Shown here one piece after another: positions 1 through 64,000 of a DNA stretch of 64,000 nucleotides. Each line of letters begins with the position of its first letter. Within the stretch, counting starts at the first letter, position 1. The notes below the pieces were generated by a model, which had not been told where the DNA came from, did no database searches, and saw nothing but the letters and a program-made list of their open reading frames with translations. The position numbers were made by a program, and so were the translations under genes. This DNA comes from Penicillus capitatus (Eukaryota > Plantae > Chlorophyta): positions 1,350,351 through 1,414,350 of the forward strand of contig OZ287697.1 of the NCBI GenBank assembly GCA_965649825.1. Reading direction: 5' to 3'.

Positions 1-3000
1 GGAGGAAGCATTGACATCCAGAATGTGACAATGGAAGAATGTCTAGCAGAGTTGTCAGGAGGAGCAATCAGAATGGCATTCTCCAGCGAAGCCGCAGTCC
101 AGAACTCTGTCTTTGTGAGAAACCATGCGAATAATGGCGGAGGCATTGCTTTAGTACAATCATCGTCGCTATTCGGAGATGGTTTGCTCTTCGAGAACAA
201 CACTGTTCATGAGGGTGGCGGGGCACTTGCTTCTGAACAAGCGAGCACCATAGAGATAAACAGCTCCGTTTTCCAAAACAATGCTGGCGGCGATGGAGGG
301 GTGTTGATCCAGCACACCAACACTACTGGGATCTTTACGAATGTCACGTTTGTCAGGAATCAGGCCTGGCGGAAGGGAGGAATAGCCTACGCAACAGAAT
401 CTAATATCAGTTTCGATCGGTGTGTCTTCGAATGGAGCATCGCAGCGGAGCACGGCGGCTTTCTCTATTCGCAAAGAAGCGTGCGTTGTCACTTTAATGG
501 ATCGGTGTTGATCCATGGCTTCTCGCGGGAGGGAGGATGCATCGTCGTGGAGAAAGGGAATCTCACGTTGCAGAAGACATCCATCCATAACTGTATTGCA
601 TCGAAGGATGGAGGTGCACTGCATTTGTCGGAAGGCGCGAACGCGACAATCACTGATTCAAGCATCGACGCAAGTCATGCTGGCGAACACGGAGGCGGTG
701 TTTACATGTCACGCAGCTCTCTCAGTGCAAACAGACTCCTTCTCACTGAAAACATCGCAAAAGGCGACGGGGGTGGCATCTTCTCGGAACACTCTACTGG
801 CATCAGAATTTTCAACGATTCCTACTTCGGGAACAATTCTGCGCAGTCCGGTGGAGGCGTGGCATTGAGAAACACAACAGGGTCCTTGATCGGCGTCAGA
901 ATCTATGGCAACTTGGCATCGAATCGTGGAGGGGCCTGTTGCGCAGAAAGCTCTTCTAACCTGAGGGTCGTAGAATGCACAATCCGTCACAGTGAGGCCG
1001 GAAGCGGTGGCAGTTTCTTTGTCCGGAAGTCGCATTTGAAGCTCATAAGTTCAAAACTCAAAGCTGGACGGGCTTCCGCGGAAGGAGGTTTCATCTCAGC
1101 TACGGAGAACAGCTCGATCCGTGCGGACACCACATCGATGATTGCTGGCGTATCGAAAGAGGGCGGCGCTGTTTTCCTCTCTGAATCTGTCTTCACAGCC
1201 ACGGGCATTCGGATATCGCAGTGCAAGGCAGACGGCGACGGGGGTGCCATCAAGGGCATCGATTCGTCGAGGATGCTCTGCAGTGGCTGCACTCTGAACA
1301 ACAACAACGCAACCCGCGGTGGAGCTGTGTTTGCTATGTATAACGACACTCGAATGCTCTCGATGCAATTAGACAACTGCACTCTCCAGAACAACTCGGC
1401 AACATTTGGAGGTATTCTCGATCACACTAGGGTTAGAGTGAAGTTCACATTCTTCCACGCAGGAGGCGTCCAGATCGTGGCCGGACCGGAGTCCGTATTT
1501 CGGGACTGCCGTGCGGGATGGGACACTTGCAAAGTTACAACTTTGATGAACACAGTCTTTGCAGACAACGAAGCAAAGGCGGCTGGCGGAGCCGTCTTCA
1601 TCGACACAGTTGCTGGACTCCGACTGAGCTGCTCAGATGAATCGGCAGGACATGGACTGGAGTTCTATTCGGAGAAGCGGTGGAAGTCCATGAAGCGCTT
1701 GACATCCACCGAAGACATCTGCCCATCCTGGAAGAACAATTCAGCTGGCAGATACGGACCAGATGTGGCATCTTACGCATCTGATGTCCTAAAGAAGGTC
1801 ACCAACAAAAAGACAAAATGGTTGAGTCCATCAGGCAAGAATCATTACACCATACGCCGCCACAAGAGCGGAAGACCGATTCTCATCGCTTTCACACCCG
1901 TAGACGACCTCGAGCAGAGTCCAGCTGTCGGGATGGACAACAACAACATCGAGGCCGTGACGTTTTCGCCCGATGGATTCTTTGTCGGAAGCGTGAGAGT
2001 GCCACTTAATGCTGCAGGTGTGAATATCAGCACGACTGGCTTCGTGCAGCCTGACGAGTACACAGTTCAGATCGATTTCGAAGGAGCAGATCTGGAGAGC
2101 TTAGAGATCACTGTGGAGGTACAGAAGTGCGAGATCGGCGAAGTTCCTTCGGCAAATGGAACATTCTGCGAACCGTGCAGCGATGCGACATTCAGTTTCT
2201 TTCCAGAAGAGGACTTGGAATGTCATCCGTGTCCAGAAAACGGAAGATGCAACACATCGACCATTCAGCCGATGCCAGGTTACTGGCATCCCTGGCCGTG
2301 CTCCAGTCATCTTCAGAAATGCCTGACGGAGCAGGCATGTGACTTCGACCAGCGCGAGAAGCAACTCTACGAGCTGACGAAAGATATGGAATCGTGTCAC
2401 ATGTCCGACGATCTTGTAGTTGAATACGGAGACGCCCAGTGCGGCACGGTATGGCTGCCCCTTCTCTATCTGAATGCTTTCATTGCGGGTGTTAGGGTCA
2501 CACGGGTCCGCTGTGCGGTTCCTGCAAGCCCGGTTATGGCAAGGCTCAGTTCTTCACTTGCAAAGAGTGTTTCTCCCATGAGGCGAATGTCTTGCTCTAC
2601 CTCCTGTCGATACTGGTGTTCTTGATTTTGGCCGCGATTGCAATGAAAACGAATCTCGAACCCGGTGACCAGTATTCGGGATCGAAGGTCGTCGTCGAGA
2701 TCTTCAAGGTATACGCATGATCTTTCGATTTCTGTCTGCGAGTGTGTTCCGTCAGATTGCGGTGGACTATGCGCAGGTGACGGCTATTGCCATTTCCATC
2801 AACGTCTCCTGGAGCACGACGCTCTCCAAATTCTTCGAAATTACTGGTATCGTATGACAGCGACGATTACTGTTGTCCGAATCTGTTGTCTGCTGGTAGA
2901 ATTGGTCAGCGGCGTCGTCACGGAGGCCATCGAAAGAGCTGTCCATTGTCTCCTGCACGAAGATGATGCCATGGAGCGAGGCATATTTGGTGTTGTGATG

Positions 3001-3885
3001 GACGTCATCACAGTCGTCGCCGTTATGCTCGTGTGCTTGGCTTTCTGGGGCACCGTATCCGTCGTTTCTCGTAGGAACGGAGGTTACTTCTGGAAGCGAG
3101 CGGGGATGAGTTTCTTCGTCGTCTCCTACCTGGGCTACATCTCGCTGACGAGCACCTCCATCCACGTTCTGACATGTCTCGAAGTCCACGACTCGCTGGC
3201 AGTCATGAACAACAGCACAACATCGTACTGGGCCGCGGACACGAACATCCAGTGCCACGAGGGATCTCACGCAGTTCTGGAACGCACACTCGGCTGGCCA
3301 CTCCTTGTCGTTTTTTCGTTCGGATTTCCCGTCGTCGTTCTGTACATCACTGTGTTCGCTGACGAACAGGAGAGGAATCAAGGAGACAGGCGAGAAGTAA
3401 TCGGGTTTATATACCAATCCTACAAGAAGCGTTATTGCTACTGGGAAACCGTCGTTCTCTTAAGGAAGGCGGCCTTGGCCGTCGTCGTCATGCTTGCCTA
3501 TCCGCTGGGGCCAAGTCTACAGGTCATGTTCTCGGCCTCCGTCTTCACGGTGGCTCTCTATTTGCAGACCGTTTGCCGACCATTCGGTGAAGAGAAGGAC
3601 GGGCAGAATGGCCAACAGGACGCGTCAGACGAACTGGATCGACTGAACGACTTGGAAAGCACTTCGCTTCTCGTCTCGCTGCTGACGTTCGTGTCCAGTC
3701 TCTGTTTCGACGCAGAGAATGTGTCGTCGGGCGTCCGTTCTTCTGTCAGTCTGGTGATTCTGGCGCTGAATCTGGTTTTCTTTTCGTACCTTGTTATCGT
3801 CTTCGCGGGAAAGTGTATCGACCGCTGGATAGCTGATCCTAACGCACAGCCTCTTACGTCTGGTTCGAGCAGCGACGAGCCATAA
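1..3885 (+). CDS. R1: Pmp-like beta-helix / Cys-rich / multi-TM surface receptor-like protein, 5' part outside window
   Basis: ORFs 25..2625 and 2665..3885 join through GT-AG introns 1412-1462, 2449-2495, 2709-2755, 2847-2899. Spliced product: GGA[IV]/FxxN repeats, stalk, CEPC...CHPCPENGRC...YWHPWPC...GHTGPLCGSC, then ~9 hydrophobic segments with YWE.V.L.RK and RPF...LNDLE motifs. Stop TAA at 3883-3885. Confidence 0.9.
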
Positions 3886-5529
3886 GTACCTGCTGCACTA
3901 AAACAACCAGTCACTAACTAAGTTTGACGAGTTTCTTGGAAATGCTTCACAAACGTAAAACATGTGTTAGACAGACACTTATTTCTAAAGCGTGGATTGT
4001 GACACCCCTTTGACAAAGCGTGACGAGAAAGGCGTTCATGACCTGAACGACAACATCGTCGAGTTTTGGAGCGGATTTACTCTGTCGGCTATAAAATAGT
4101 CCCGCCCCGATAGAACGATCGAATTTCGAATGTGGACAGAGGTATGTGAGGTAAGAACAAACTTGGTCCTCTGAGAACCCAGAGAACTACTTCGTCTAGT
4201 CCTTCTATTTTCGTTTGGCGAATACACGATGGCTTTCGCGACGAACGACAATTCGTTGAGTGCATTGCGTGCGTTGTTCTGCAAACATGCGTATGTGCTG
4301 TCCTCGTATAAGATACGGCACCCATGCTTGGCGATCATGATCCTTTTCTTCGCGTTCGTGAACAGACTCTTCAGGAGGCGAGGTGATGGAATGAAGTGAT
4401 CATTTAGAGGTGCAAAGCACCGTTCAAGAACAGGTACCGTTGCCCACGGTCGACTGGAGTTTCCGGAGCCGCCAAGGTGCAAGAGAATCTGTTCAGACTT
4501 CCGTTGCAAAAGCAGTCTTTGCAGGGGATACGTCTTCGTCGTCGTTTGCGTTTGCGCACGTTCGTCCGGTGAGGGCGTGTCAACCCGTGTCCAGAGAACA
4601 GAGACACTAGCAGTCGAGTCGTCTCGCCAGACCGGGATATCGACATCAGGCACCGTGCTCGGAGCGCGTCCAGAGCTGTCCTGTTCCAGGCGTTTGTGCC
4701 CGTGACAGTCGTGAAGACGCATTAGCTTAACGCACATAAGATGCACAGATACGTCCGTTCGATGAACACCAATACTTGCAAAACTGCACAGAGGCGCAGT
4801 GCAGAGAGGTGAGCTTCAAGTCTGTTTTAAGATTTCATCCAGCGTCGTTCGGTTTATAGGACATGAAGGGCCACGCTCCAGATCGCGCAAGAAAACCTTC
4901 GGCAACTTTCAATCTCATCTCTGCGACAAGTGCTTTTCTGGCACCAGTACAGTCTTGTCTTGATCATTCACTCTATCATTTTTTGTTTTACTGTGTTTCC
5001 GGCATCACGATCAGAAGCAATATCTCTTATCTGTTCGTTTATCGTCGAATCAGGAGTGAGCACAAGACTTTCATCAGTCTACGGCCTCGACAAGCAGTTT
5101 CTGTCAAGTGGACAATCGAATAAGGTCTTGCAAAACAGGTCACAAAGGAGAGTTGTTCTTCGCGTCACGGTGTCGCCGGTGGCGTCGAACGGAGACGATT
5201 CAAGCGGAAGACTTCTTTACAAGTGTTCGGAGAAGGTCCATAATGCTTCAGAATGTCCTCTGTATACTCGCCTGTCGGCGTGACTTTCAAATTAGATGAG
5301 TCGGCACGTAAGCAGAGCCAGCGAGGAGGGCCTTTTTTATAGAACAGAACCTTCCTAACATGACCTCAAGCGCCCTTCCCGACAGATGACCCATTGACAT
5401 CAAGGCAACCATATCCCCAATCAAAATCTTAGCGACACAGGGTCGAATAGATAATTCTGTTCAATCTAGTGATGATGCAGAACATGCAAAATAGAAAACA
5501 ACCGAGCTCTTCAGGTTATTCATTGTTCT

Positions 5530-5773: not shown

Positions 5774-5802
5774 GTTCTTTTTTCTAATCCTTTTCATGTT
5801 GT

Positions 5803-6060
5803 TGCCAGTACACATCCGGCGTCGTACCTGCCAGTACACATCCGGCGTCGTACCTGCCAGTACACATCCGGCGTCGTACCTGCCAGTACACATCCGGCGT
5901 CGTACCTGCCAGTACACATCCGGCGTCGTACCTGCCAGTACACATCCGGCGTCGTACCTGCCAGTACACATCCGGCGTCGTACCTGCCAGTACACATCCG
6001 GCGTCGTACCTGCCAGTACACATCCGGCGTCGTACCTGCCAGTACACATCCGGCGGCGTA
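5803..6060. repeat. 26-bp minisatellite, ~10 copies of TGCCAGTACACATCCGGCGTCGTACC
   Basis: Nine identical units from 5803 to 6036 plus a near-complete tenth ending CCGGCGGCGTA. No spacers between units. Confidence 0.97.
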
Positions 6061-6573: not shown

Positions 6574-6640
6574 TTCAGATTCTCCTGAACGGTCGGGTAT
6601 AGAGGAGGATAGGGAACCAGTGCGCGCTGAAGACTTCGCT

Positions 6641-6875: not shown

Positions 6876-7088
6876 CACATCGAGGCGGCGTACCTGCCAG
6901 TACACATCGAGGCGGCGTACCTGCCAGTACACATCGAGGCGGCGTACCTGCCAGTACACATCGAGGCGGCGTACCTGCCAGTACACATCGAGGCGGCGTA
7001 CCTGCCAGTACACATCGAGGCGGCGTACCTGCCAGTACACATCGAGGCGGCGTACCTGCCAGTACACATCGAGGCGGCGTACCTGCCA
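6876..7088. repeat. 27-bp minisatellite, ~8 copies of TGCCAGTACACATCGAGGCGGCGTACC
   Basis: Seven identical units 6895-7083 plus partial units at both ends. Same orientation and same TGCCAGTACACATC...CGTACC core as the 26-bp array. Confidence 0.97.
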
Positions 7089-7271: not shown

Positions 7272-7925
7272 CAATGTAAGCTGGTGATGCGAATCATTAC
7301 GACCAATAGCTGCTTGCATAAGAAACGGACATGAGCTGGCCCATCAAGTAATAAAACACTATTGTTCCACAGGACTTCAGCATCAAACGCTGGTTTGTGC
7401 TGCGACTACACAACTTTCTTCGGTTCTGACCTTACTCCCGTTTATCCTGTTTCACATTCACGTTCTCGCTACGGACCTTTCCCCGAGACTAATTCGACCT
7501 CGTCTGAAGCAGTAAGTTCTTTCGACGGAAAGACGGTCGAGTTTAAGTTTATAGATCGTCTGACGCCAGTTCTGTCTGTCTCTTAGCCATGACTGGGGAA
7601 GAGCTCGCTTTTGTGACGGAAAGGAGATACCGTGACGAGACGAACAAAATGTGCACCCCACGTTCTGCTGGCTTGTAATCCCCACGGCCGCTGTCGCCGA
7701 GCGATGTGACGCTGCCTCGTTTTTGGGGAGGCCACATCATGGGGGGTCTTGGTTGAATCACCCAAGGCCATTTTCTCTGGCTCTGAGGCTAGGGTGATTC
7801 ACCTGCCTCGCCAAGTCGCGTCACCATACGGGTATAAAATGAACAATCTGGACGTGTTTTCGCCTTGCTCTGTAACTTGTGAAGTCTTCCGCTGTTATCG
7901 TTTCGTTCGGCACCTCCGCGCGACA

Positions 7926-7938
7926 TGGTTTCGGAGCG
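7926..7938 (+). promoter_or_regulatory. Primer-binding site-like sequence TGGTTTCGGAGCG
   Basis: Abuts the 5' LTR. Differs at 2 of 12 positions from the canonical plant tRNA-iMet PBS TGGTATCAGAGC. Identical copy at 55881-55893. Confidence 0.75.
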
Positions 7939-8047
7939 TTGACACGTTCCTCAGTTTGAATCTCCGTCTTAGTGACGTTGCGCATTTGCTGTGTGCTTTG
8001 CGCCTTTGAGCCCTTACGAGGAAGTTTCAGGAAAACAAGTTACAAGG

Positions 8048-9091
8048 ATGAGTCAAGCACGACGAGAAAGAAGAACGGGGCAAGGTCGGTGGGAGGAAAA
8101 CAGAAGCGGGATTTACGGTATCTACGAGTACCTCGAAAGTTTCCTCGTCTATTGTCGCGAAGACGAGGGGCTCTGCCCCAGACTTCGCGGGCGGAGAACA
8201 TGGATATTGCCGGATGGCTGGTCCACGATAGAGGACGAGTGTTTTTTGGTGGACCTCCAGGATATGTGCGATTTTGTCTACTACGTTTGCCCAAGGCTGC
8301 AAGAGAGGCGCGAGTTGCAAACGACGACGAGACGACTGCGCGAGGAAAGAGAGAGGCTACGCCAGCAAGTGGCGAACCTCGAAGCAGAAAAGGAAGGGTT
8401 ACGAGCGACGCTCAAAATGTCTGAGGCAAGTGCTCTTGCCAGGGGACTGTCAGTCGGGGTTTTACAGCAAGAGGTATCCGAGGCGACAGCAGAAAATGAG
8501 CGGCTCTCAGGGCTTAATACGCAGTTACAACAAGGCATCGCGGAGGCCCAACAAGACACAAACGAGGCCCGTGTGGAGACCTCTTCTACACAACAGAAGC
8601 TGAGAGAGACTGAGACGGCCTACGAAGAGGCCAAGAAGCATTTTATTATGGCACCTGATTTGGTGTCTAATCTTCGGTCGCTGACCGACGCGGTGAAGGC
8701 AGTGCATGACGAAGTTCGGACGAGCAGTGAGAGGACAGTTGAGGCGGTGGCGAGAAGACCACCAGATGGACGAAGCGAGAAGACGCTCACCCAAATGAAG
8801 CGCGTTCTCCACGACATCGGTCGCTATCCGCGGCGACGACGAAGGAAAAAGGCAGCCGACGCAGCTGACGATGGCGGAGGTGCCATCAAGCGCGGTCGGA
8901 TCTGCTATCTGTGCCGGTGCAAAGGGCACTTGGCAGAAAACTGTCCGCGGGTGCGGACAGTTGGGACGACGTCAGCGGAACCGACGATGTCAGATGCGGA
9001 GCAACAGCCAGCGGAATCGAGCGCAGAAGGAGCGTCATCGGGATGGACCATTTTCTCGGCGCTGAGGCGCTTCACCTCGGGCATTGACTGA
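8048..9091 (+). CDS. Gag-like protein: long coiled coil, RRRRKK basic patch, single CCHC zinc knuckle
   Basis: First ATG at 8048 within ORF 7991..9091. Heptad-rich E/Q/R/L segment; CYLCRCKGHLAENC fits CX2CX4HX4C. No protease, RT, RNase H or integrase motifs. Confidence 0.8.
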   Translation: MSQARRERRTGQGRWEENRSGIYGIYEYLESFLVYCREDEGLCPRLRGRRTWILPDGWSTIEDECFLVDLQDMCDFVYYVCPRLQERRELQTTTRRLREERERLRQQVANLEAEKEGLRATLKMSEASALARGLSVGVLQQEVSEATAENERLSGLNTQLQQGIAEAQQDTNEARVETSSTQQKLRETETAYEEAKKHFIMAPDLVSNLRSLTDAVKAVHDEVRTSSERTVEAVARRPPDGRSEKTLTQMKRVLHDIGRYPRRRRRKKAADAADDGGGAIKRGRICYLCRCKGHLAENCPRVRTVGTTSAEPTMSDAEQQPAESSAEGASSGWTIFSALRRFTSGID

Positions 9092-9140
9092 AGCCGTTAG
9101 CATTTTCTGTGGGGGTTTGCTTTACTTGTTTTTCGGAGTT

Positions 9141-9154
9141 GGCGGGAAGCGTGG
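9141..9154 (+). promoter_or_regulatory. Putative polypurine tract GGCGGGAAGCGTGG
   Basis: Purine-rich, directly abuts the 3' LTR, and is conserved at 57089-57102 in element 2. Confidence 0.6.
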
Positions 9155-9729
9155 TGTCGCCGAGCGATGTGACGCTGCCTCGTTTTTGGGGAGGCCACAT
9201 CATGGGGGGTCTTGGTTGAATCACCCAAGGCCATTTTCTCTGGCTCTGAGGCTAGGGTGATTCACCTGCCTCGCCAAGTCGCGTCACCATACGGGTATAA
9301 AATGAACAATCTGGACGTGTTTTCGCCTTGCTCTGTAACTTGTGAAGTCTTCCGCTGTTATCGTTTCGTTCGGCACCTCCGCGCGACAGCCGCTTTTTCA
9401 ACCGTCGCGTCGAGTCGTCTTTGAATCGTCCACCGAACGCAGACGTCGGTCACTGGTCTCTCGGGAATCAAATCCACCGATTTGACGACCGTCTCTTCCT
9501 CGACGCACAGCCGAGAGCTTCCGCCGATGTCGAATCCATGCTGATCGATAATTTGATTCGCTCGTGGGCCAGCTCGGCTGGGGCAAATCTCGATGTCGAT
9601 GGGGTGATGGTGATGTTTGACGCCGAACGGAACACGATTAGATATCAAAGGATAGAAAGTCCCCATGCTCTGAATCCTCTCCTTCACGATTCGAGCACGC
9701 CCTGACAGATAACCGCGAGAGGCGCAAAC

Positions 9730-10791: not shown

Positions 10792-13700
10792 TTAAACGCC
10801 GGAAGAAAGACTCGATTCATCGGGAGACCGGCCAAATCCCACATAGGGCATCAAGGACTGGAGATTGTAGCCCAGCCAGATCGTCAGAATCTTCAGTGTT
10901 CCGGCATCTGCATCGATGTGCGTTCCGCATTCGTTCATGGAGAGCTTAATGCACTTGGCACAGTACTTGAAAAGAAAAGAGAGAAGAACAAGAAAGATGG
11001 AGATGTTGAGAACAACGCAGATGATTGAGAGCGTCATTCCACGCCACTCTTTCGTGAGACCCTCACTTTCCAGTATGCTGGCTATCAGGATCGTCAGGTG
11101 CGAGACGAAAAGGGCAGACAAGTCTATTTTGTTCAGAGCATCAAATTCCTTTCTGTACGGCATCACTACAATCTGCAATCCCATCGCAAGCAAGATGAAG
11201 ATGGCGAGGGATGTGATAAAACCCAGACTGTCAAAGCGGTGGGCACAGAACACCAGAAAAGCAATGATCGCCTTCCTCAGCACGATGGAAACCTCCCAGT
11301 AGCGTCGCCACCCGGATCCATAGCCACGGTACAGGAATCCAGTGGTCCGATAGACCCACCTATCCGGATGGTCGAGCAGTTCTTTGGGCGATGTGAGGAT
11401 TGAGATGAAGGCGATGAGAAGTCCAACATAGACGATGCTTACGAACGGGAGAATCCAGATCACCAGCATCAAGTGTTGGCCCTCGAAGCATCTCAGACTT
11501 GTGTCCACTGCCCAATAACTGATCTCTTCATATTTTGTCGTGTCTATGATCTTCTCATCGTTCTGCGTTCCATCCAGAACGTTGTATACACGAACGCAGA
11601 GGACAACGCTAAGTGTTGTCTTAATCACTGATGCGGAGGTTATGTACCATAGTGCCATGAGTGAAAGCAAAGATCTCTGTGCGATGTAACGGAGTGGCCG
11701 TTGCATTTGATAAACGAGTGCCATTACCATCCAGAACGCAATGAGCAACAGGAATGCAGTAACAGGAACGACAGAAACGCTCACGATCGTTCCCCAGACG
11801 GTCGGATGAAGAAACTGCTTTGCTTTACTCAGACAGACAACGGAGCGCCGGATGCTCTCTGCGGCGAGCCCGCTGATGAACTCTATACAGCACAGAACGA
11901 CGATAAGGTAATGCAGATGGTCGACATGGACATCTGAGGACCTGCTATCTTTCCCAGGATGAGAACAGGAAATGCCCATCCAACATTCAAGGTTGCAATC
12001 AGCACTGTCACTTGAACGTAGTTCAGCGTTATCTGCAACAACGGTCACTGTTAGGGAAGAAAACGTGCACGATTGTCACACCTTGAACATCTCGGTAACT
12101 CTCCATTGTGCCAGGGCCGCTTCAGTCACATGCACCATTTCTGCTGAGGAATCTATACCTTCGACCTCGTGTGATCTGTCAGAAAAGGCTTCTTCTCTCA
12201 GACTTTCTGACATGCTTCGGATCGAAAGATCTGATAGTTGAATGCTACGGGAAATCCGTCTGTGGCCGGAAAGCATCATCCGTTGGCGGTTTGTAGTGCA
12301 CAATGTTCCCTTGATCGTAATCCCGGATAAAAACAACAGAATCACTACTGATATGCAGATCACCAGTACATTGCCGGTTTTAACAGGACACTCTTGGCAC
12401 TTGGAAGAAAGAGAACTGCCGTATGAACTCTCACACGATCCGCAGAGTGGACCAGTGTAACCCTGCATACACAACAGAGATCGCCAACATCTGAGCAAAT
12501 TAGAATTCTAAACTTGCCTCTTCACACTGTGCCTGTTGATATTCTTCGATCTCCTTGCTGCTGATGTTGCAGTTGGAAATATCCCGTGTCAGTTGCTCCA
12601 GTTTCTCAACGCGTTTCTTGTTGTGACATGCGTCCGCGCTCAGACATTTGCTGACGTTCTTGGAACAGGGTGATGCGTGCCAATATTCCTCGTTTGGCAA
12701 GATGATTTGACTGCTACAGTCTCCGTTCTCTGGACACGGACGACATTCGGCATCATTTTCTGGGGAGAAATTGAAAGAGACGGCGTTGCAAGACTCACAG
12801 AACGTCCCATTGCCGGAAGGAACTTCGCCAATGTCACATGGCTTCACCTCCACAGTGATCTCGAACCTCTCCAGGTCTGCTCCCTCGAACTCAATCAGAA
12901 CTCTGTAATTGCCAGGCTGCACGAAGCCAGTGGCACTGAAAGTCGTGCCTTCCATCCCCAGAGTCTTGCGAACACTTCCAGCCAAGAATCCATCCGGCGA
13001 GGACATTACAGCCTCGACGTCTTCACTGTTTTCTCCAACGGCCGGGCCTTGTCCGAGTTCATCCACGGCTGTTAAGACGATCAGGGGAATCGGTTCTCCG
13101 CTTCTATGTTTGTGCACGGTGTAATTACTCCCACTGACCAAACTCAGCGCTTCCATCTGTTCATCAACGATCTCCTTTCGGATATCGATTGCAGAGGTTG
13201 CCACATCCCGTCCGTATCTCCCAGCTGAATTATTCTCCCAGGATGTGCAGATGTCATCAACGGATGTCAGGCGCTTCATGAAGTCCCGCTGCTTCCCCGA
13301 ATAGAATTGCAGTGCCTGTTCTTTTGATTCAGCTGAGCAGTTCAGTCGGAGGCCAGCAACTGTGTCGATGAAGACAGCTCCGCCTGCGGACCCTGCTCTG
13401 TTGTTAATCATCGACGTGTTCACCAGAGCCACGACTCCACATTCATCCAGTTCTTCCAGACACGTCTGCGATATGGACTCAGTTTCGGCGGCGATCTGGA
13501 TCCCTCCTAAGTAAAGAACAGTGTGAACCTCTCACTCTGTCGGTCTTGTGATGAATACCTCCAAATCTGGCTGAGTTGTTGAAGATATCGCTGTTGTCCA
13601 GTTGCACGGAAATGGACTGAGTAAAACTATACTCAAAGAATATGGCTCCGCCGCGGGATGCTTCGTTGCCCGCCAGAGTACAGCCACTGCAGAGCAACCT

Positions 13701-51300: not shown

Positions 51301-54300
51301 AACACGCGCATTCGTTTCACAGACTGTCGCTTTCAAGACAATCGTGGACGACGTGGAGGCGCTCTTGGCGTGTGGAGGTATTCAATTGCGGATCTGACAG
51401 ATTGCGTGTGCAGAGACAGCTATGCAGACAATGACGGCGGCTGCCTCTTCGGCGGCAATGACAGTCACATAAACATCCGAAACGTTAGCCTGGTAAACTG
51501 CACAGCAGAGCGCAATGGAGGCGGCATCCACCTTGAACAGTCGACGAATCTCGATATCGCGAAAAGCAGCTTCTTGGAGAATCGTGCCGAACAGAACGGC
51601 GGGTCCATTTCCGCGAGAACGTCCAATGTCAGTGGCACCGGTCTGGTCTTCAGGACGAACACGGCAAGACAGAGTGGCGGAAGCGTACTCTGCGCAGAGC
51701 ACTGCGAAATGGACATCGCCGATGCGGTCTTCGCCGACAACCACGCTGACGACGGAGGTGCCGGTTGTCTCATTGATGGATCTCGCATCGCCATTGGCGG
51801 CTGCCAGTTGAGCGGGAACGAAGCCAAAAGAAACGGCGGCAGTTTCTACGCCAATGAGGCGATGCTCTATGTATCGGATTCGCAATTCGACAGGGGGCTT
51901 GCCGGGATCGACGGAGGGTTTGTGAGATTGGACAATGGCAGTCGCATCATTCTACAGAACGTCAACATGAGAAAGGGCGAGGCAAAAAACAGCGGAGGAG
52001 CGATGTCCATCGACGATTCCGAATTCGGCGCCGCCGACTTCCGAATCGAGAAATGCATCGCCCGATTCGACGGCGGTGCAATGCATATGCTCAACGCTCA
52101 GACATCAAACTGCACCAGATGCCAGTTGACGGAAAACAGAGCCGAACGCGGAGGAGCCGTCGCCGTTGAACACACGAAATCGCCTTCGGTGGAATGGTGC
52201 TTCATCTATTCGACACTGCATGACAACACGGCGTCCTACGGAGGTATGTCAGTCACCCTATACGCCTCACGCTCGGATACGAAGACGTGCTGTGCAGGTG
52301 CGATTCATCTTCTGGAACCACAAGACGGAGAAAGGCAGAGTGTGACAGACCAAGGCCGACCACTCTTTGGCTTAGTTCGCACTGAACTGTCCCGCAACGT
52401 GGCGGAGGTCGGCGGCAACGACATCCTCGCCTTCGATCTCACAGGCGTGCGTTTTATCTGCGATGATGACGCGTCTGCGACAACGGCCACGTCGATCCCT
52501 TCGCGAGACGAACTGGAGAAAGCGCACAGACTGGATGCGGAAGGCGCTACGTGTCCGGAGTGGCGCAACGGAGACGGCGGCGACATGACGACGTACGTGC
52601 GTTCCGTGGAGAAGACGATGTTTTTTCAGCAAACGAACGAGAGCGTTTCCGTCGATGGCGATCGCCACACAATACGAAGCCATGCGAGTGGGACGCCCCT
52701 TCCCACGATCGTCTTTCGATCCCTGACCCAGCTGGGGCAGCCTTCGTCTCTCGGACTGAACAGGGGTGTGATTTTGGCCAAGACCGAATCGGGTGACTTC
52801 TTCTCGGGTAACTTGCAGGTCGACCTGCACAACGGAACCGGCAATTTCTCGAGCATCGTCGGGTTTCATAATCCTGGAAGCTATGAACTCCGGATCGCTT
52901 TCAGTGAGGACTACCTACCAGACTTCGTCGTCACCGTCGAGATTCGTGACTGCCGCATCGGCGAATCGGTGACGGCGGGCGGGTCGTTCTGTCGCCCGTG
53001 CAGCGGAGCGACGTACAGTTTCTTGCCAGATCGAGAGGATCTCGGATGTCTGCCGTGCCCGGAGAACGGAAGATGCAACACATCGACCATTCAGCCGCTG
53101 CCAGGTTACTGGCATCCCTGGCCGTGCTCCAGTCATCTTCAGAAATGCCTGACGGAGCAGGCATGCGACTTCGACCAGCGCGAAGAGCGACTCTACGAGC
53201 TGACGAAAGATATGGAATCGTGTCACATGTCCGACGACCTTGTAGTTGAATACGGAGACGCCCAGTGCCACACAGTATGCGCATCTGTCTCTATCTGGCG
53301 TCTCTTGATGTGGGTATTAGGGTCACACGGGTCCGCTTTGCGGTTCCTGCAAGCCAGATTACGGCAAGGCTCAGTTCTTCACCTGCAAGGAGTGCTTTAC
53401 CGATGGGGTGAATGTCTTGCTCTATCTCCTGTCGATCTTTGTGTTCTTGGTTTTGGCTGCGATTGCAATGAAAACGAATCTCGAACCCGATGACCAGCAT
53501 CCGGGATCGAAGGTCGTCGTTGAGATCTTCAAGGTATATGCATGATCATTCGATGCCTGTCTGTGAGTGTGTTCCGTCAGATTGCGGTGGACTATGCGCA
53601 GGTGACGGCTATTGCCATTTCCATCAACGTCTCCTGGAGCACGACGCTCTCCAAATTCTTCGAGATTGCAGGTATCGCACGACGACGCTGAGTCTCTGTG
53701 GTCTCAATCCGTTATCTGTTCTTAGAATTGATCAGCGGCGTCATCACGGAGGCCATCGAAAGAGCTGTCCATTGTCTCCTGCACGAAGATGATGCCGACA
53801 TCGAGCGCGCCGTCTTTGCCGTCGTGATGGACATCGTCACTGTCCTCGGCGTCCTGCTCCTATTCTGCGCATTCTGGGGAATCGTCACCGTCATTCGTCA
53901 CGAAGACTGGTGTTACCTTTGGAAGAAACTCGGAATGAGTTTCTTTGTCGTTTCCTATCTGAGCTACATCGCGCTGACGAGCACCTCCATCCACATCTTG
54001 ACATGTCTCGAAGTCCACGACTCGGTGGAGGTCGCGAACGACAGCACGACAGCTTACTGGGTAGCAGATACGAACATCCGGTGCCACGAAGGATCTCACG
54101 CAGTTCTGAAGCATACGCTCGGCTGGCCACTCCTTGTCGTTTTTTCGTTCGGATTTCCCGTCGTCGTTCTGTGCATCACTGTGTTCGCTGACGAACAGAA
54201 GAGAGATCAAGGAAACAGGAAAGAGATTCTCGGATTTCTGTACCAATCCTACAGAAAGCGGTACTGTTTCTGGGAAACCATCGTCCTCTTAAGAAAGGCA

Positions 54301-54888
54301 GCTCTGGCCGTCGTCGTCATGCTCGCTTATCCACTGGGGCCAAATCTGCAAGTCATGTTCTCAGCCTCCGTTTTCACGGTGGCACTCTATTTGCAGACCG
54401 TTTGCCGACCATTCGGCGAAGACGAGAACGGACAGAATGGCCAACGGGACGCGGCAGACGAGCAGAATGACCAACAAGACGCTGCAGACGGGCAGAATGA
54501 CCAACAAGACGCTGCAGACGGGCAGAATGAGCGACGGGACGCTGCAGACGGGCAGAATGGCCAACAAGACGCAGCAGACGGGCAGAATGGCCAACAAGAC
54601 GCAGCAGACGGGCAGAATGGCCAACAAGACGCAGCAGACGGGCAGAATGGCCAACAGGACGCTGCGAAGGAACTGGATCGACTGAACGACTTGGAAAGCA
54701 TCTCGCTTCTCGTCTCGCTACTGACGTTCGTGTCCAGTCTCTGTTTCAATGCAGAGAACGCATCGTCGGGCGTTCGTTTGTTTGTCAGTCTGGCGATTCT
54801 GGCGCTGAATCTGGTTTTCTTTTCGTACCTTGTTATCGTTTTCTTGAAGAAGTTCTGCAGATGCAGCAGAGCTGACCCTAACAACTAA
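48371..54888 (+). CDS. R7: Pmp-like beta-helix / Cys-rich / multi-TM surface receptor-like protein (complete)
   Basis: Signal peptide MLCEKFLLLFLCLSLSLSALA. Introns 48495-48561, 48642-48698, 48760-48814, 49134-49184, 52244-52297, 53275-53320, plus the two conserved TM-region introns. Stop TAA at 54886-54888. Confidence 0.9.
54448..54657 (+). repeat. 30-bp coding tandem repeat x7 (DAADGQNGQQ) in a loop of the R7 membrane domain
   Basis: GACGC[GTA]GCAGACG[AG]GCAGAATG[AG]CCAACAA-type units between RPF and ELDRLNDLE. R1 has about one unit at this site. Confidence 0.95.
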
Positions 54889-55635: not shown

Positions 55636-57347
55636 TGTCGCCAAGATCTGGCTTGACGATGTGACTGCCTAGATTCTGAGGGGTTCATCATTTGGGGGGA
55701 CGCAGGCTGACTCACCTAAGGCGCTATTCTCTGGTTCTGGCGCAAGAGTGACTCACCTGCCTAGGCAGGTCACATCGCCACGGGGATATTTAAACGAACA
55801 ATCTGAACGTGTTTTCACCTTGCTTCGAACACTTGTAAGACTTCCGCTGTTATCGTTTCGTTCGGCGCCTCCGCGCGACATGGTTTCGGAGCGTTAAAAC
55901 GTTCCTCAGTTTGATTCTCCGTCTCAGTGACGTTGCGCATTTGCTGTGTGCTTTGCGCCTTTGAGTCCTTTCGAGGAAAAGTTTCAGGAAAACAAGTTAC
56001 AAGGATGAGTCAAGCACGACGAAGAGGAACGGAGCAAGGTCTTGGAGGGGAAGGCTTCGACGTAATTTTTTTTTCGGCACCACTGTGTACGGACCAAGTT
56101 TGCTCAGCTCTCTGGGACAAGACGAGGGAGTATACCCTGGTGCGCTACATTGTCACAGGGTGTGGACGCAGAGTCGGATTAGTGTGAACAACCAGTTCGG
56201 AGATATGTTTTTGGTTGACGCGGCCGAACTGGTTGAGTTTTTCAGATACGTTTGTCCGCGACTGCAAGAAAGACGGGAACTGCAAGGGACGACGGGACGT
56301 TTGCACAAGGAGAATGAACGGTTGAAACGGGAGCTGCAATGGGCACAACGACGAGCCAGTGCGGCCGAATTGGAAGCTAGTGAAGCCAACGACGAGATGG
56401 ATTTTTTGCTGGTCGGAAATGAGAATCTGCAGGAGCAAAAACAAAAGCTTCAACAAGAGCTTTCCGAGGCGGAACGAGGTATCGTTGAGGCACAGAGAAG
56501 TGCGACCGAGGCACGCCGAGAAGCCTCCTCCACACAACAAAAACTTAGACGGACAGAGACGGCCTACGAAGAGGCCAAAAGGCATTTCATTATGGCGCCT
56601 GATTTGGTGCCTTGTCTTCAGTCGTTAACAACAGAAGTGAAGACGCTACAGGAGGAAGTCCGAATGAGCGGCGAAAAGACAGTTGACGTGGTGGCACAAC
56701 GACCACCAGATGGACGAAGTGAAAAGACGCTAAACCAGATGAAGCGTGTGCTGCACGACATCGGTCGATATCCGCGGCGACGACGAAAGGGAAAAGCAGC
56801 CGACGCAGCTGACGATGGCGGAGGTGCCATCAAGCGCGGTCGGATCTGCTATGTGTGCCGGCGCAAAGGGCACGTGGCAGAAAACTGTCCGCGGGTGCGG
56901 ACAGTTGGTACGACGTCGGCGGAAACAACGATGTCAGATGTGGAGCAACGGCCGGCGGAATCAAGCACAGAAGCAGCGTCTTCGGGATGGACCCTTTTTT
57001 CGGCTCTGAGACGTTTCACCTCGGGCATCGACTGAAGACCGTCTGTTCATTTTTTTGTGGGGGTTTGCTTACAGTGTTTTCGGAGTTTGGCGGGAAGCGT
57101 GGTGTCGCCAAGATCTGGCTTGACGATGTGACTGCCTAGATTCTGAGGGGTTCATCATTTGGGGGGACGCAGGCTGACTCACCTAAGGCGCTATTCTCTG
57201 GTTCTGGCGCAAGAGTGACTCACCTACCTAGGCAGGTCACATCGCCACGGGGATATTTAAACGAACAATCTGAACGTGTTTTCACCTTGCTTCGAACACT
57301 TGTAAGACTTCCGCTGTTATCGTTTCGTTCGGCGCCTCCGCGCGACA
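55636..57347 (+). mobile_element. Complete non-autonomous LTR retroelement 2 (1712 bp; same family as 7692-9388)
   Basis: 245-bp LTRs at 55636-55880 and 57103-57347 (one mismatch seen: CACCTGCCTA vs CACCTACCTA). TG...CA termini. 5-bp TSD ATCTG (55631-55635 and 57348-57352). Same PBS and PPT as element 1. Confidence 0.93.
56005..57035 (+). CDS. Gag-like coiled-coil/CCHC protein, with a -1 frame break at a T9 run
   Basis: ATG 56005 (MSQARRR..., as in element 1) is out of frame with ORF 56085..57035 (YVCPRLQERRELQ...CYVCRRKGHVAENC...GWTLFSALRRFTSGID). The break maps to T9 at 56066-56074. Confidence 0.72.
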
Positions 57348-58751: not shown

Positions 58752-61700
58752 ATGCGACGCCGTTTACTTGGTCTGTTGTTGACGTGTGTGGTGTTCCGCA
58801 CGAACGCGAGCGCATGCTCGTGTCCGACGCACCATCTCCGTCGAGCTGTGGCTGCGGCGACGGCGGAAGATGCCTCGATCGTGCGTTTTTCCAGCGAAGT
58901 CTCAGCCTCAAGTTCATCCGAAACTTCAGAAAGTGCAGCATCTGCGCCGACTCATGCGACAGTGACTGCATCGTTCTCGACGAGGCACGAGGACGAAGAG
59001 GCGGATCCGTCTCCCACGTCCCAAATGAACAAGTCTGCAGAGGCGGAACGTTCTTCTGTCGCTATGCTAGGTCGGAGCGAGGGCCGTTCCCTGCGACAAG
59101 ATGACGGCCTCGATGACGAAGCTTCTACAGGTGAGACAGACCTTTGCTGTCTGCGAGAGCATTTCCTTGACGTCTGTGCTCTTTGTCTTGGTAGGCCTTC
59201 CTTGTTCGCTGAGCAAACGAACCCTTAGAGAACACCTGGACAGAGCGACCAGAACGTGGCGTATCAACCGTTCACTGCTTAATGACGTCGAGGATGACAT
59301 CCAAGTCATTGTCAACTGTACGAAGCCAGGCGACGTCCTCGCCTTCAATGCGAGGAGAATCCGGCCGTCTTCGCGCATCGTCATTCCGTGGCCACTGACG
59401 TTAACAGCATCGGTGGACAGTTTCGAAGTCGAGGAAGGCGTGTTTCCTCGTTCTGGCGCGAAGGCAACGTTCACCTGCCCGAACAGAAGAGAGGGCGTCT
59501 TCTTGGTCAAGTAAGATTTGAATTCCCGCATCTGCTGTTGACTAATATCGATCTGGCGTTCAGGACAGCGGGTGTCCTTTTCGCCAATCTGATATTCGAG
59601 GGCTGCTTGCTCGAGACTGGCAGTTCGAGGTCTATTGTGGAAGTCGAAGGGTGTTCTTCCAGTCGCATCAAAGACAACATTCAACTCCACCATGTCAGTT
59701 TCGAGAATAACACGCTGATCAACGGCGCAGGACTCGCAATGCAGTCTCCATCTTGCTTTGAGCTGGAGCTGATCGACTTCGTCTTCGAGAACAACACTTG
59801 TGATGGTCGTTGTGGTGTGATCTTGGCAATACACAATCGACTGCGAGACGTCATCATTCGGCGGAACAAGCCGTCAGACACTGCGAACGCCAACACGACA
59901 GTGTTCTATGCGCCTCCTGGATCTGAGACATCTGTCAACCGCATGAACAGTTTAGAGAACAGATGTTCAAGCGTCAAAGTCCAGGATGCATCTCTGGACA
60001 TGACACGTTGTACATTCATCCAGAATTCGATCGCGGCTGGCCAGGATGGCGTGAACAGTACATCTCTGAATTTGACGTCGGCAACAGTGTCGATCAAGGA
60101 GTGTCGGTTTCAACAGAACACGGCTCAGATCGGAGGTGTCATTGCCGGATCCAGATCGAATGTCACCTTCATCGACAGCGCCTTTGATGCAAATGCTGCT
60201 TCAAGTGGCGGTGTCATGGCGTTTGACGATGACAGCACTGTCTCGATTCAATCCTGCAATTTCTCTTCGAATACAGCTCTCCAATCTGGTGGAATTCTAT
60301 TTGCAAGATCGTCTCAGCTATTTGTCAGTTATTCCTTTCTGGAAAAGAATTCTGCAAATGGAAACGGTGGTTGCTTTTGTCTGGATAATTCGAGCAATCT
60401 CGAAATGTCGTTCGCCACCATGACGGACAACCAAGCTGTTTTTGGTGGAGTGTTGGTTATCAGAGGGGAGGCATCAGGAAATGTGACGCATTCGTCCTTC
60501 CACATGAACGATGCATCAACATCTGGCGGTGCCGCTTTTGTCCAAGCTTCTACGCTCTCCCTCGAAAAGTGTCGTCTTGCCAATGGATCTGCAGAATATG
60601 GAGGAGGTATTACTGCAGTCTCTTCAAACATCTCCGTTCTGGAGAGCACTGCGTCCAATCTCTCCGCGAGCAAGGAAGGTGGATTTGTTGTCGTGCGTGC
60701 CGATTCTGTGTTACGCATGAGTGACTGCATATGCTCGGGCAACCAGGCAAGCTTTGGTGGGTGCATGCACGTGAAGGAGAATTCGTTGGGCATCGTCACT
60801 GACTGCCAGTTTGACAAGAACGATGCATCAACATCTGGCGGCGCCGCTTTTGTCCGAAGCTCTACCTTCTTAGTTCAGAAGTGTCACGTTGCCAATGGAT
60901 CTGCAGAATATGGAGGAGGTATTACTGCAGTCTCTTCAAACATCTCCGTTCTGGAGAGCACTGCGTCCAATCTCTCCGCGAGCAAGGAAGGTGAATTTGT
61001 TGTCGTGCGTGCCGATTCTGTGTTACGCATGAGTGACTGCATATGCTCGGGCAACCAGGCAAGCTTTGGTGGGTGCATGCACGTGAAGGAGAATTCGTTG
61101 GGCATCGTCACTTACTGCCAGTTTGACAAGAACGATGCATCTACATCTGGCGGTTCCGCTTACGTCAAAGATTCCGTCCTATCCGTTCACACGTGCAGCT
61201 TCGTGAATGGATCTGCAGTAAACGGTGGTGGGATCATTTCATTCACTTCAAACATCACTGTTGACGATACCTCTGCTTTTGACATGTCTGCAGTCCAGTA
61301 TGGTGGATTTCTCGCTGGCAAAACATTCAATATACGGATGAAGGACTGCTCATTCTCGGGCAACCAGGCAGACTTTGGTGGAGCCATTTGCCTTCTGAGC
61401 AACTCATCCGGCAACATCACTGACTGCCAGTTTGCCAAGAACAGTGCATCTACATCTGGCGGCGCCGCTTACGTCAAAGATTCCGTCCTATCCGTTCAGA
61501 AGAGCAGCTTCGTGAATGGATCAGCAGCACAAGGCGGAGCAATCCACTCATTCTTTTCAAACATTTCTATCTGGAAGACTGACGCATCTGGTCAGTCTGC
61601 CAGTGAGCTTGGCGGTGCTATCTACTTCTCCAAATCTGTCTTCAAGATAAACAACGTCAAGATTTCGGAGTGTGAGGCAGAAAGTGATGGGGGTGCCATT

Positions 61701-64000
61701 ATGGGTATCAATTCATCAAGACTGCTCTGCAGTGGCTGCATTCTGATCGACAACAAAGCAAGACGTGGCGGAGCCATCTTCTTCAAGTATAATGACACGC
61801 AATCTATTTCCATGCAATTAGACAACAGCATTCTCCAGAACAACTCAGCTGAGTATGGAGGTACTTATGATAAGAATATCAGAAAAAAGCTTCACAGTCT
61901 TCTTCACTTAGGAGGGATTCAGATTGCTGCCGAAACGTTGTCCTTGTTGCAGAACTGTCGGACGGAACATGATGAATGTAGAGTTGTTGCTATGGCGAAC
62001 ACCTCGCTGATGGATAACAGAGCAAGGTCGGCAGGTGGTGCTATCTTTATTGACACAGTTGCTGGTCTCCGGCTGAACTGCTCAGATAGATCGAAAGAGG
62101 AGGAACTGCAATTCTTTTCGAAAGAACAGTGGATGTCTATGAGGCGCCTGGTATCTATCTACGACATCTGCCCATCCTGGAAAAACAACACAGCTGAGAG
62201 ATATGGACGGGATGTGGCGACCTCCGCATTCGGTATGCGGAAGGAGATTGCTGATGAACAGACAGGATTGCCGCGTTCGGTGAACGGAAATAATTACACC
62301 ATACACAACCACAGAAGCGGAAAACCAATTCCCGTGATCAGTCTAACACTAGTGGATGAGCTCGGACAAGGCCCGGTTGTTGGGGAGAACAACGAGACCA
62401 TCAAGGCTGTGATGTCTTCGCCGGATGGATTCTTTACTGGAAGTGTTAGCAGGCCTCTGGGCATCGAAAGCGCGAATTTCAATGCCACTGGCTTCGTAAA
62501 GCCTGGAGTGTACAAAGTTAAGATTGAGTTCGAAGGAACAGACCTGGAGAGCTTCGAGATCACTGTGGAGGTTAAGCCGTGTGAAATGGGTGAAGTTCCT
62601 TCTGGAAACGGGACGTTCTGTGAATCTTGCAACGCTGTCTCTTTTAATTTTTCTCCGGAAGAGGATCTGGAATGCCATCCGTGTCCAGAGAATGGAGACT
62701 GTAGCAGTCAAGTCATCCTGCCAAACAAAGGGTATTGGCATCGAACTCCTTGCTCGGAGCGCGTCCAAAGATGTCTGACAACAGAAGCGTGTGACAGTGA
62801 CAATCGTGAGGACGAGTTAGCAGAACTCACACAAGATGTGGAATCCTGTGACTTTAATGAACAGTACCTGCAGAACTACACAGAGGCGCAGTGCAGAGAG
62901 GTGCGCTTCAAGTTTGACTGAAAACTGCTATCAAGTGTCGTTGGGATTTCAGGGGCATGAAGGGGCACTATGTGGATCCTGCAAGGAATCTTACGGCAAG
63001 TCCCACTCTCATCTTTGCGAAGAATGTCGATCAGATGCTGCTGATGTCGTCTTAGTCGTTCTGTCATTTCTTGTCTTATTAGGCTTATCCAGCATCACCA
63101 TCAGAAGTAACCTCATCTCTGTGTCTTCATCGCAGCAGGGACAGCAAAGGCAAACTACTCCTCAGTTTTCGGCTGCCTCCACCAGCACCCACACAGTTCC
63201 AGCAGAGAGGAGAATAGAATTGGCAGTCATGAAAGATATCACAGAAGAAGGCTCGACTTCTGATCGCAGTCAAGAAGCTGGTACTGGTCAGCCTTCTAAA
63301 GATGCAGAGCTCTCCAAATGGAAGGCAATTGAGCTCTTAAAGGTAACTCTTTCCTCTGTCACATGTTGTGTCCATTCATTATGACTGTTCTGCAGATTAC
63401 AGTGAACTTTTTGCAGGTCACAGCCATAGCTGTGGCAATCGATGCTCAGTGGACATTCGCATTAATCGCACTTTTCCGTACTGCAGGTAAGTAAACAACG
63501 ACTCTGCACGAAAGTTTCTGAACATGTCGTCTGTGATGCAGAGTTCGTTAGTGCCATCACATCGGAAGCCGTCAATCGTTCTGTCGACTGCCTTATCCCA
63601 GCAGGAACGCATCTGCAGCGATCAGTCGCCAGTACACTGGTAGATGCATCGCAGCCGATTGCATGCATCCTTGTCTTTATCGTTTTCTGGCTGGCGATCA
63701 AGATCAGACGTCGCAAGTCATGGATGTATCTGGTGAGGGAGTGTGTCCTCAGCACCCTCGTCGTCTTTTACGTCAGTTACATCTCCATCACCAAGACACT
63801 CATCAACATCTTTAACTGTGTCGAAGTCCACGATTCAGCAACAGTTGGAATCGATGAGACAACAAACTACTGGGCAGTGGACACCGGCGTCGAGTGCTAC
63901 GAGGGATCCCATGCCGCACTGGCCTATCTGTTGGCGTGGCCATTCCTCGTCATCTTTACTTTTGGATTTCCACTCTCTGTCGCATTCCTCGTCGCAAAGA
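58752..64000 (+). CDS. R8: Pmp-like beta-helix / Cys-rich / multi-TM surface receptor-like protein, 3' end outside window
   Basis: Signal peptide MRRRLLGLLLTCVVFRTNA. Introns 59131-59194, 59511-59563, 61861-61911, 62901-62952, plus the two conserved TM-region introns. Frame still open at 64000. Confidence 0.9.
60510..61445. repeat. 312-bp (104-aa, 4-rung) tandem duplication in the R8 beta-helix exon
   Basis: Anchor [GA][AG]TGCATC[AT]ACATCTGGCGG recurs at 60510, 60822, 61134 and 61443. The first two units are near-identical. Confidence 0.9.

Follow-up and report, generated by a model that had tools for sequence, protein, structure and literature searches.

Tandem Pmp-repeat membrane proteins of Penicillus capitatus re-paired at a conserved CPENG motif

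Two described protein families bear on the locus studied here. The first is the fungal PF06011 family, which includes Pkd2 of S. pombe, Flc1-3 of S. cerevisiae and Cryptococcus, and TrpR of Aspergillus. Pkd2 has a predicted extracellular N-terminal domain and a cytoplasmic tail (PMC9727806) and shows Ca2+ permeation on membrane stretch (PMC9727806, PMC6727746), and Flc1 regulates Ca2+ homeostasis (PMC9600462). The second is the chlamydial Pmp family (PF02415, Chlam_PMP), whose paralogs carry GGA(I/L/V)/FxxN-type repeats with a period of ~26 amino acids (aa) and in variable number. We analyzed a 64,000-nucleotide (nt) stretch of the green alga Penicillus capitatus (contig OZ287697.1, positions 1,350,351 to 1,414,350; the window), in which eight paralogous genes each join a predicted Pmp-type beta-helix ectodomain to a multi-pass membrane module, and in which the two halves have been re-paired between copies at a conserved coding motif, CPENG.

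Adjoining sequence was taken from contig ctg340394_13x_l of an ENA metagenome assembly (ERZ25074695), where the window lies at ~400553-464552, reversed. The window has a G+C content of ~52% (52.4% in Ostreobium, for comparison), uses the standard genetic code and consists of long open reading frames (ORFs) with short gaps between them; a tRNA scan of the window found none. The paralogs are labeled R1 to R8, with R1 truncated at the window start and R8 at the window end. The R5 model, built by hand, served as the reference from which our own spliced protein-to-genome aligner derived models of the remaining copies. A preliminary description, made from the letters of the window, had proposed eight paralogs with six common intron positions and one architecture, and the spliced alignment reproduced this: six GT-AG introns of 37-67 nt lie at identical positions in all eight.

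Exon 1 encodes a signal peptide and an acidic low-complexity stretch, exon 2 a "cap" of ~105 aa, and exon 3 the beta-helix. Exon 4 encodes a stalk of ~330 aa, an Ig-like beta-sandwich followed by a Cys-rich CxxC...CxPCPENGxC region. Exon 5 carries a GxxGPLCGSC EGF-like knot, the first transmembrane (TM) helix and a linker, exon 6 holds TM2, and exon 7 is multi-pass over ~350 aa. The encoded proteins, putative glycoproteins, are 1700-2300 aa long, in the order signal peptide, cap, beta-helix, Ig-like domain, Cys-rich stalk and membrane module. The helix exon measures 1832 nt in R2, 2222 in R5, 2297 in R8, 2456 in R3, 2885 in R4, 3059 in R7 and 3083 in R6, matching the range of 1.8-3.1 kb proposed earlier. 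The genes are as follows.

1-3885, forward strand: R1, the 3' 3.9 kb of a chimeric gene, with 3.25 kb more upstream of the window; exons 1-1411 (helix, cut), 1463-2448, 2496-2708, 2756-2846 and 2900-3882.
10795-16199, reverse strand: R2, complete, 1699 aa, R5/R8-like ectodomain and "type C" membrane module; exons 16199-15824, 15765-15444, 15390-13559, 13506-12528, 12490-12082, 12032-11942 and 11882-10795.
16953-22670, reverse strand: R3, complete, ATG at 22670, membrane module of R7/R1 type (51-54%).
23312-29739, forward strand: R4, cap exon 23784-24100, helix exon 24151-27035, tail to 29739; first exon and start codon uncertain.
31796-37559, forward strand: R5, complete reference model, 1812 aa; exons 31796-32174, 32231-32552, 32606-34827, 34882-35870, 35922-36302, 36355-36445 and 36505-37556.
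39021-45499, forward strand: R6, 2081 codons, with an in-frame TGA in the cap exon at 39560-39562.
48371-54888, forward strand: R7, cap exon 48823-49133, helix exon 49185-52243, tail to 54885; exon 1 structure uncertain.
58752-64000, forward strand: R8, R5-like throughout, cut inside the last exon by the window end.

R5, R2 and R3 are complete and open, and R7 is open with its exon 1 uncertain. The preliminary description had counted an array of eight; these are present in the window, and the full tandem array is larger, spanning at least 108 kb with ~14 genes and continuing past both window ends. Upstream, locus L004 is 100% identical to window positions 1-5297 and extends a further 15.8 kb, which holds a gene resembling R3 (93% identity), the intact R5-like gene R0 (1890 aa) and the 5' part of R1. 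Joined to this sequence, R1 has all six introns, a helix exon of 3965 nt and an intact product of 2273 aa. On the opposite side, locus L002 contains three additional family members 7 kb past the window end.

We compared the paralogs exon by exon. R1 is demonstrably an R6 head joined to an R7 tail, and R2 an R5/R8 head joined to a type-C tail. R1 shares 86/82% aa identity with R6 in exons 3/4 and 86/97/78% with R7, the nearest relative of its 3' half, in exons 5/6/7. R2 shares 74-80/56-59/64-65% with R5/R8 in exons 2/3/4, and in exons 5-7 it is only 24-38% identical to every window copy, so that the pairing of one ectodomain type with either an R5/R8-type or a distinct R2-type module is as first described. 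Tiled blastn searches gave the same division in the DNA: positions 1-2244 of R1 match R6 at 84-98% and positions 2173-3897 match R7 at 73-90%, while R2 matches R5/R8 at 70-85% down to ~12400 and no DNA in the window matches its tail.

Phylogenies built separately on the two sides of CPENG by neighbor joining conflict, each with full bootstrap support. Upstream, (R1,R6) and (R2,R5,R8) are each recovered at 100%; downstream, (R1,R7) and (R5,R8) are recovered at 100% and (R5,R6,R8) at 99%. A MaxChi test of R1 against R6 and R7 gave a chi2 of 980, with informative sites divided 667:26 on the left and 56:539 on the right (permutation p <= 0.002), and a test of R5 against R8 and R2 gave a chi2 of 189 close to the same column. 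Across the junction, synonymous divergence (dS) between R1 and R6 rises from 0.08 to saturation and that between R1 and R7 falls from ~2 to 0.10. The exon identities, MaxChi, the conflicting trees and the jump in dS all uphold the earlier proposal that ectodomain and membrane module assort independently. The exchange zones are narrow.

2164-2251, forward strand: R1 exchange zone, where R6 and R7 both match; informative sites switch at ~2235-2241, in the codons CPENG/RC of exon 4.
12690-12770, reverse strand: R2 exchange zone; similarity to R5/R8 stops just past CPENGDCSSQIILPN.

The R2 switch lies ~10 codons later than that of R1. No 60-nt stretch in the alignment of the paralogs is more conserved than that at the junction (mean identity 0.71, a tied maximum), and both junctions fall inside exon 4, 200-270 nt upstream of intron 4. 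This placement within a conserved exonic island identifies them as homologous exchanges, and we therefore rejected exon shuffling at introns; "modular shuffling", the term first proposed, does not hold in that sense. The R1/R6 ectodomain had also been described as paired with two module types. The pairing of R1 with an R7-type module stands, but we did not adopt a swap in R6, which is nearest to R2/R5/R8 from the helix exon onward and ambiguous in the cap exon. As R6 is sister-like to the R2/R5/R8 group, its R5/R8-type tail need not have been acquired by exchange. R0 and R5 are 67% identical upstream of the junction and 95% identical downstream.

The type-C tail represents an old subfamily, numerous in the same assembly and with one member on a separate contig of 344x coverage. 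We considered whether the chimeras could be mis-assemblies of similar paralogs, given the low coverage of the contig (ctg340394_13x) and the position of the junction in a conserved stretch. R1, however, differs from both of its "parents" on both sides (dS ~0.1; 81-98% nt identity) and so cannot have been pieced together from R6 and R7 reads. Similarity to both extends over only ~90 bp, far below long-read length; R1 is a complete, intact ORF with rung insertions and deletions of its own; and the R2 tail has relatives of its own elsewhere at 84% and 74% identity. We regard an artefact of this kind as extremely improbable.

A decayed tail lies just downstream of R1.

4503-5170, forward strand: R5/R6/R8-type tail remnant that spans exon 4 from PCPENG onward, intron 4 and exon 5 and carries stops and frameshifts.

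The relic begins exactly at PCPENG, 0.6 kb downstream of the R1 stop, and is 68-73% identical to living tails. That it is the displaced original tail of R1 is doubtful, since this divergence is too great for a segmental duplicate that is otherwise 89% identical. The duplicate in question is a block of ~9 kb running from the middle of R5 through the spacer to CPENG of R6, which recurs upstream as R0-R1 at ~89.5% identity. Thus, R1 is the copy of R6 within a segmental duplication or a long conversion tract that ends at CPENG. Along R1-R6 and R0-R5, dS varies as a mosaic from 0.01 to more than 1, as expected from repeated patches of gene conversion.

Helix length shifts through in-frame gain and loss of whole rungs. 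R1 and R6 differ by indels of 104 and 189 aa; between R0 and R5 the indels are 27 and 52 aa long. Tandem Repeats Finder (TRF) located the following duplications in the helix exons.

13957-14798, reverse strand: R2, recent in-frame tandem duplication of 390 bp (5 rungs), 2.2 copies, 96%.
33846-34535, forward strand: R5, older repeat of 234 bp (3 rungs), 2.9 copies, 70%.
60502-61527, forward strand: R8, duplication of 312 bp (4 rungs), 2.1 copies at 94% and 3.3 copies at 82%.

Together, these comparisons show that the array evolves by rung gain and loss, segmental duplication or long-tract conversion, patchy conversion, and homologous exchange at CPENG. Such processes (unequal crossing-over, gene conversion and duplication of repeat units) are ordinary. 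The preliminary description had called the array rapidly recombining; we count three or four datable exchanges among ~10 genes, at dS ~0.1 for R1 and 0.4-0.6 for R2, a pace ordinary for a tandem family.

The repeats of the ectodomain are of the Pmp type, as first described. Chlam_PMP matches exceed the Pfam gathering score of 20.6 bits in R6 (36.1) and R7 (50). The GGx(I/L/V) motif recurs with a period of 26-27 aa, giving 17-33 rungs, and each protein carries 24-58 N-x-S/T sequons. An AlphaFold2 (AF2) model of exon 4 with the start of exon 5 (pLDDT 80) contains the terminal rungs, with short strands, the Ig-like sandwich and the Cys-rich part. The best Foldseek matches of the sandwich were the MG domains of complement C3 and UNC119 (E ~1e-3), and the Cys-rich part has 13 invariant columns, 8 of which are cysteine.

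The right-handed beta-helix is also the fold of many polysaccharide lyases and hydrolases, and the Ostreobium homolog described below bears the UniRef name "Right handed beta helix domain-containing protein". The proteins might then be membrane-anchored carbohydrate-active enzymes, with a pectate-lyase-fold helix that remodels a wall of xylan, mannan or sulfated polysaccharide and a membrane module that serves mainly as an anchor. However, Pfam detected in the window copies and their relatives the non-catalytic Chlam_PMP repeat alone and no lyase or hydrolase family; the solved structures in the PDB include no sequence relative of the helix exon; and a nine-helix module under such strong conservation (ratio of nonsynonymous to synonymous divergence, dN/dS, 0.05-0.35) would be more than a plain anchor. 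An enzymatic role is very unlikely on this evidence.

We used AF2 to explore the membrane module of R5 (exons 5-7; pLDDT 89, pTM 0.87). The model consists of long helices and a beta-hairpin with an invariant C...YWxxDT...C motif. It fits a predicted module of ~9 TM helices with the N terminus outside and the C terminus inside, given the order of the helices, the signal peptide and the hairpin of conserved cysteines. A coding repeat falls in one of the predicted cytoplasmic loops.

54428-54662, forward strand: 7.8 copies of a 30-bp coding repeat (DAADGQNGQQ) in R7, within a loop that joins TM helices and is predicted to be cytoplasmic.

R1 has a single unit of this repeat, against ~8 in R7.

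A profile of the module, searched against 1.84 billion representative proteins, found 9506 relatives at E <= 1e-3 and 277 at E <= 1e-30. We tested 70 diverse relatives, all with a profile E <= 1e-52 to the module, for Pfam families. PF06011 was the only recurrent one, matching 18 of the 70 at E <= 0.01 (best E 7.3e-13) and exceeding its gathering score of 28.5 bits in two (P0149, 35.5 bits; P0155, 32.2 bits). Judged from these profile matches, the module is therefore remotely homologous to the Flc/Pkd2 "TRP" domain of fungi, at any rate in its C-terminal half. The likeness proposed earlier is thus borne out through the relatives, whereas the window copies themselves stay below threshold and resemble no solved TRP or PKD2 structure. 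Among the 23 members of set A1, PF06011 matched one, and no Pfam match to an N-terminal ML-like/TRP_N domain was found in the window copies or the relatives. A canonical TRP fold (the six-TM, tetrameric TRP/polycystin type) was rejected, as Foldseek gave no significant match in the PDB.

Homology to PF06011 also leaves room for an internal location. The proteins could be Flc-like transporters or channels of the endoplasmic reticulum (ER), Golgi or vacuole, with a lumenal beta-helix that handles wall precursors or glycans. Yeast Flc members regulate calcium homeostasis and the transport of flavin (PMC9600462), the ER is one of the sites where Pkd2 has been seen (PMC11333956), and the topology indicated by signal peptide and sequons fits a lumenal ectodomain as well as an extracellular one. 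Surface proteins, however, more typically combine copy-number expansion with a rigid ectodomain of such length (17-33 rungs) and heavy glycosylation, and we consider the internal location improbable.

The closest named full-length relatives, with the same design of Chlam_PMP repeats and C-terminal module, come from three other algae.

Caulerpa lentillifera: g3687-g3796 and others, uncharacterised.
Bryopsis sp. KO-2023: BSKO_05282, BSKO_06881 and BSKO_09668, uncharacterised.
Ostreobium quekettii: CAD7699384.1, uncharacterised, the homolog whose UniRef name is given above.

Chlam_PMP scores 31-84 bits in the Caulerpa and Bryopsis relatives. By its nearest relatives the window most likely stems from a bryopsidalean (siphonous) alga, with which its G+C content and genetic code are compatible. 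Neighboring gene numbers suggest that Caulerpa has arrays too. Further homologs found by word-indexed searches are paralogs within the same assembly, and a scan of JGI metagenomes returned only short contigs with distant relatives. We found no description of the family in the searchable literature or in the main text of the genome papers on Caulerpa, Bryopsis, Halimeda and Ostreobium, and the literature on Chlam_PMP in eukaryotes and algae and on PF06011 gave no account of this combination of beta-helix and membrane module.

Discordance between stalk and TM module was noted among the Caulerpa proteins g3687, g3776, g3791 (P0114) and g3796. The stalk of g3687 (P0112) is 50% identical to that of g3776 (P0050) and only 28% identical to that of g3796 (P0108), with which it shares 62% identity in the TM module. 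If free of errors, these gene models hint that re-pairing may be family-wide.

Two further contigs of the same sample carry related genes. Locus L005 (ctg304653_7x_l, 14.3 kb, 7x) repeats the interval from the R7 tail to R8, without the long terminal repeat (LTR) element found there in the window, at 96.6% identity over the R7 tail and 81-86% over the next R8/R5-like gene. It is either a divergent haplotype or an additional paralogous block, and is too divergent to be called an allele. Loci L001 and L003 (ctg340592_344x_l, positions 834-877 kb of a 6.9 Mb contig at 344x) contain two convergent members, one type-A-like and one type-C, and at least the type-A gene has the intron positions of the window paralogs. 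Family members on this contig, which belongs to a far more abundant genome, imply that two related organisms or two genome compartments co-occur in the sample.

The spacers of the window hold two LTR elements.

7692-9388, forward strand: gag-only LTR element; LTRs of 234 bp, 100% identical, TG..CA; target-site duplication GCCGC; gag/CCHC ORF at 7991-9091.
55636-57347, forward strand: second gag-only LTR element, between R7 and R8; target-site duplication ATCTG; ORF at 56085-57035.

Each is 1.7 kb long with identical or near-identical LTRs and a 5-bp target-site duplication. As the two are 75-90% identical to each other, they represent independent recent insertions of a non-autonomous family. 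L005 preserves the exact empty site of the second element (2110-2170). The interval from the R1 relic to the first element contains two near-perfect tandem arrays, at 5803-6060 (26 bp x 9.9) and 6876-7088 (27 bp x 7.9), whose units are related. Long antisense ORFs of 383 and 341 aa, at 36585-37736 and 44738-45763 on the reverse strand, overlie the final exon of R5 and of R6, respectively. Codon composition probably explains them, and their conservation would follow only from that of the sense exons.

Next, we examined selection on the copies by the Nei-Gojobori method. The copies are under purifying, and not detectably diversifying, selection: dN/dS is 0.3-0.6 in the ectodomain and lower, in the range given above, in the membrane module. 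Pairwise and sliding-window values are 0.2-0.7, and no well-supported sliding window has a dN/dS above 1. The central rungs are the most diverged part of the proteins, and by this crude pairwise test they too are under purifying selection.

These values bear on the reading advanced in the preliminary description, that the array is an immune-like, fast-diversifying repertoire of non-self receptors, analogous to nucleotide-binding leucine-rich repeat receptors (NLRs) or variable lymphocyte receptors (VLRs), in which recombination and changes in helix length are selected for ligand specificity. Several observations fit it: the large tandem arrays of this genome and, by gene numbering, of Caulerpa; the re-pairing of heads and tails, with the stalk and TM discordance among g3687, g3776 and g3796; the whole-rung indels and the divergence that peaks in the central rungs; and the adhesin role of bacterial and trichomonad Pmp proteins (PMC6701047). 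Against it, pairwise dN/dS is 0.2-0.6 in nearly all sliding windows, the central helix among them, so that diversifying selection for variable ligands is not supported; the datable exchanges are few, with dS of 0.1-0.6; the sole candidate for an alternative copy is L005, too divergent for an allele; and no signaling domain typical of immune receptors was found. The analogy is supported as to recombination among tandem paralogs and not as to positive selection. We therefore judge an immune repertoire unlikely, though less so than an internal channel or an enzyme.

We favor, as the probable reading, a family of sensor-channels whose diversity arose through duplication of rungs and of segments and through gene conversion. 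By analogy with Pkd2, the proteins would act at the plasma membrane, where the rigid beta-helix may take up load or ligand, from the cell's own wall polysaccharide or from foreign surfaces, and the signal would pass via the stalk to a Pkd2/Flc-like, Ca2+-permeable module. The combination of a rigid solenoid with a module homologous to Pkd2, which is reported to admit Ca2+ on stretch, and to Flc1, which is reported to act in Ca2+ homeostasis, is what makes the family a candidate for sensing. Several points weigh against sensor-channels of this kind. The window copies fall below the PF06011 threshold, with R3 the sole match at 23.4 bits, and all matches among the relatives cover only positions ~190-403 of the 426 in the hidden Markov model (HMM). 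Foldseek of the AF2 module against the PDB gave a best E of 0.28 and TM-scores of at most 0.22, with no TRP or PKD2 entry, and the module profile found no match among PDB sequences. The AF2 modeling of the helix covered its last rungs only. A plasma-membrane location is not assured, as some PF06011 proteins (Flc) are reported at internal membranes. Finally, the TGA of R6 at 39560-39562, which corresponds to CGA in its close paralog R1, either arose by recent nonsense mutation, is a site of read-through or reflects an error of sequencing at 13x; with a premature stop, not every copy need be functional.

Bryopsidales grow as metre-scale single cells that survive wounding and harbor dense microbial partners. 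The window family is a concrete candidate for their sensing of wall stress, injury or foreign surfaces. A sensor-channel of the proposed kind would be useful to a giant, turgid and wound-prone coenocyte. More speculatively, and we think it doubtful, the family may represent a lineage-specific receptor-channel class of siphonous green algae, a beta-helix "antenna" on a Pkd2/Flc-like pore, with arrays that produce new pairings of the two at CPENG as a dedicated junction, for recognition of foreign surfaces, wall damage or wounds by giant coenocytic cells. If true, such a repertoire would recognize surfaces with a solenoid that is not the leucine-rich repeat.

Plant clusters of NLRs and receptor-like proteins (RLPs) likewise have tandem paralogs, chimeras between paralogs, changes in the number of solenoid repeats and intergenic transposable elements, but their domains are unrelated and neither positive selection nor an immune role was found here. 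VLRs are assembled somatically, a process not evident in the window genes. The array is a clear natural case in which a short conserved coding motif fixes the recombination junction, re-pairing the putative sensing and transducing halves of a protein. Chlamydial Pmp proteins share the repeat type, its period and the variable repeat number within a paralogous family. They are, however, bacterial type V autotransporters with a C-terminal beta-barrel, whereas the window proteins have a signal peptide, six spliceosomal introns and an alpha-helical multi-pass anchor of ~9 predicted TM helices, and no autotransporter domain by Pfam.

The Pmp-like proteins of trichomonads are held by a single-pass anchor. 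They are otherwise similar in being eukaryotic, expanded in number and exposed at the surface with Pmp repeats (PMC6701047), but the window family places a nine-TM, PF06011-like anchor after an Ig-like and Cys-rich stalk. The fungal PF06011 proteins share the extracellular or lumenal N-terminal domain, the multi-pass module and the cytoplasmic tail, and the N-out/C-in topology predicted for Pkd2 (PMC9727806) agrees with that suggested by AF2 here. They differ in having an ML-like N-terminal domain where the window proteins carry an ectodomain of 1200-1800 aa made of beta-helix, Ig-like and Cys-rich parts, and in being encoded by 1-4 genes rather than dozens of tandem copies. The window family also has an extra TM1 and linker ahead of the core, and its copies, below the family threshold, match only the C-terminal half of the HMM. 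The genes described here would extend PF06011 past the ML-like architecture of fungi.

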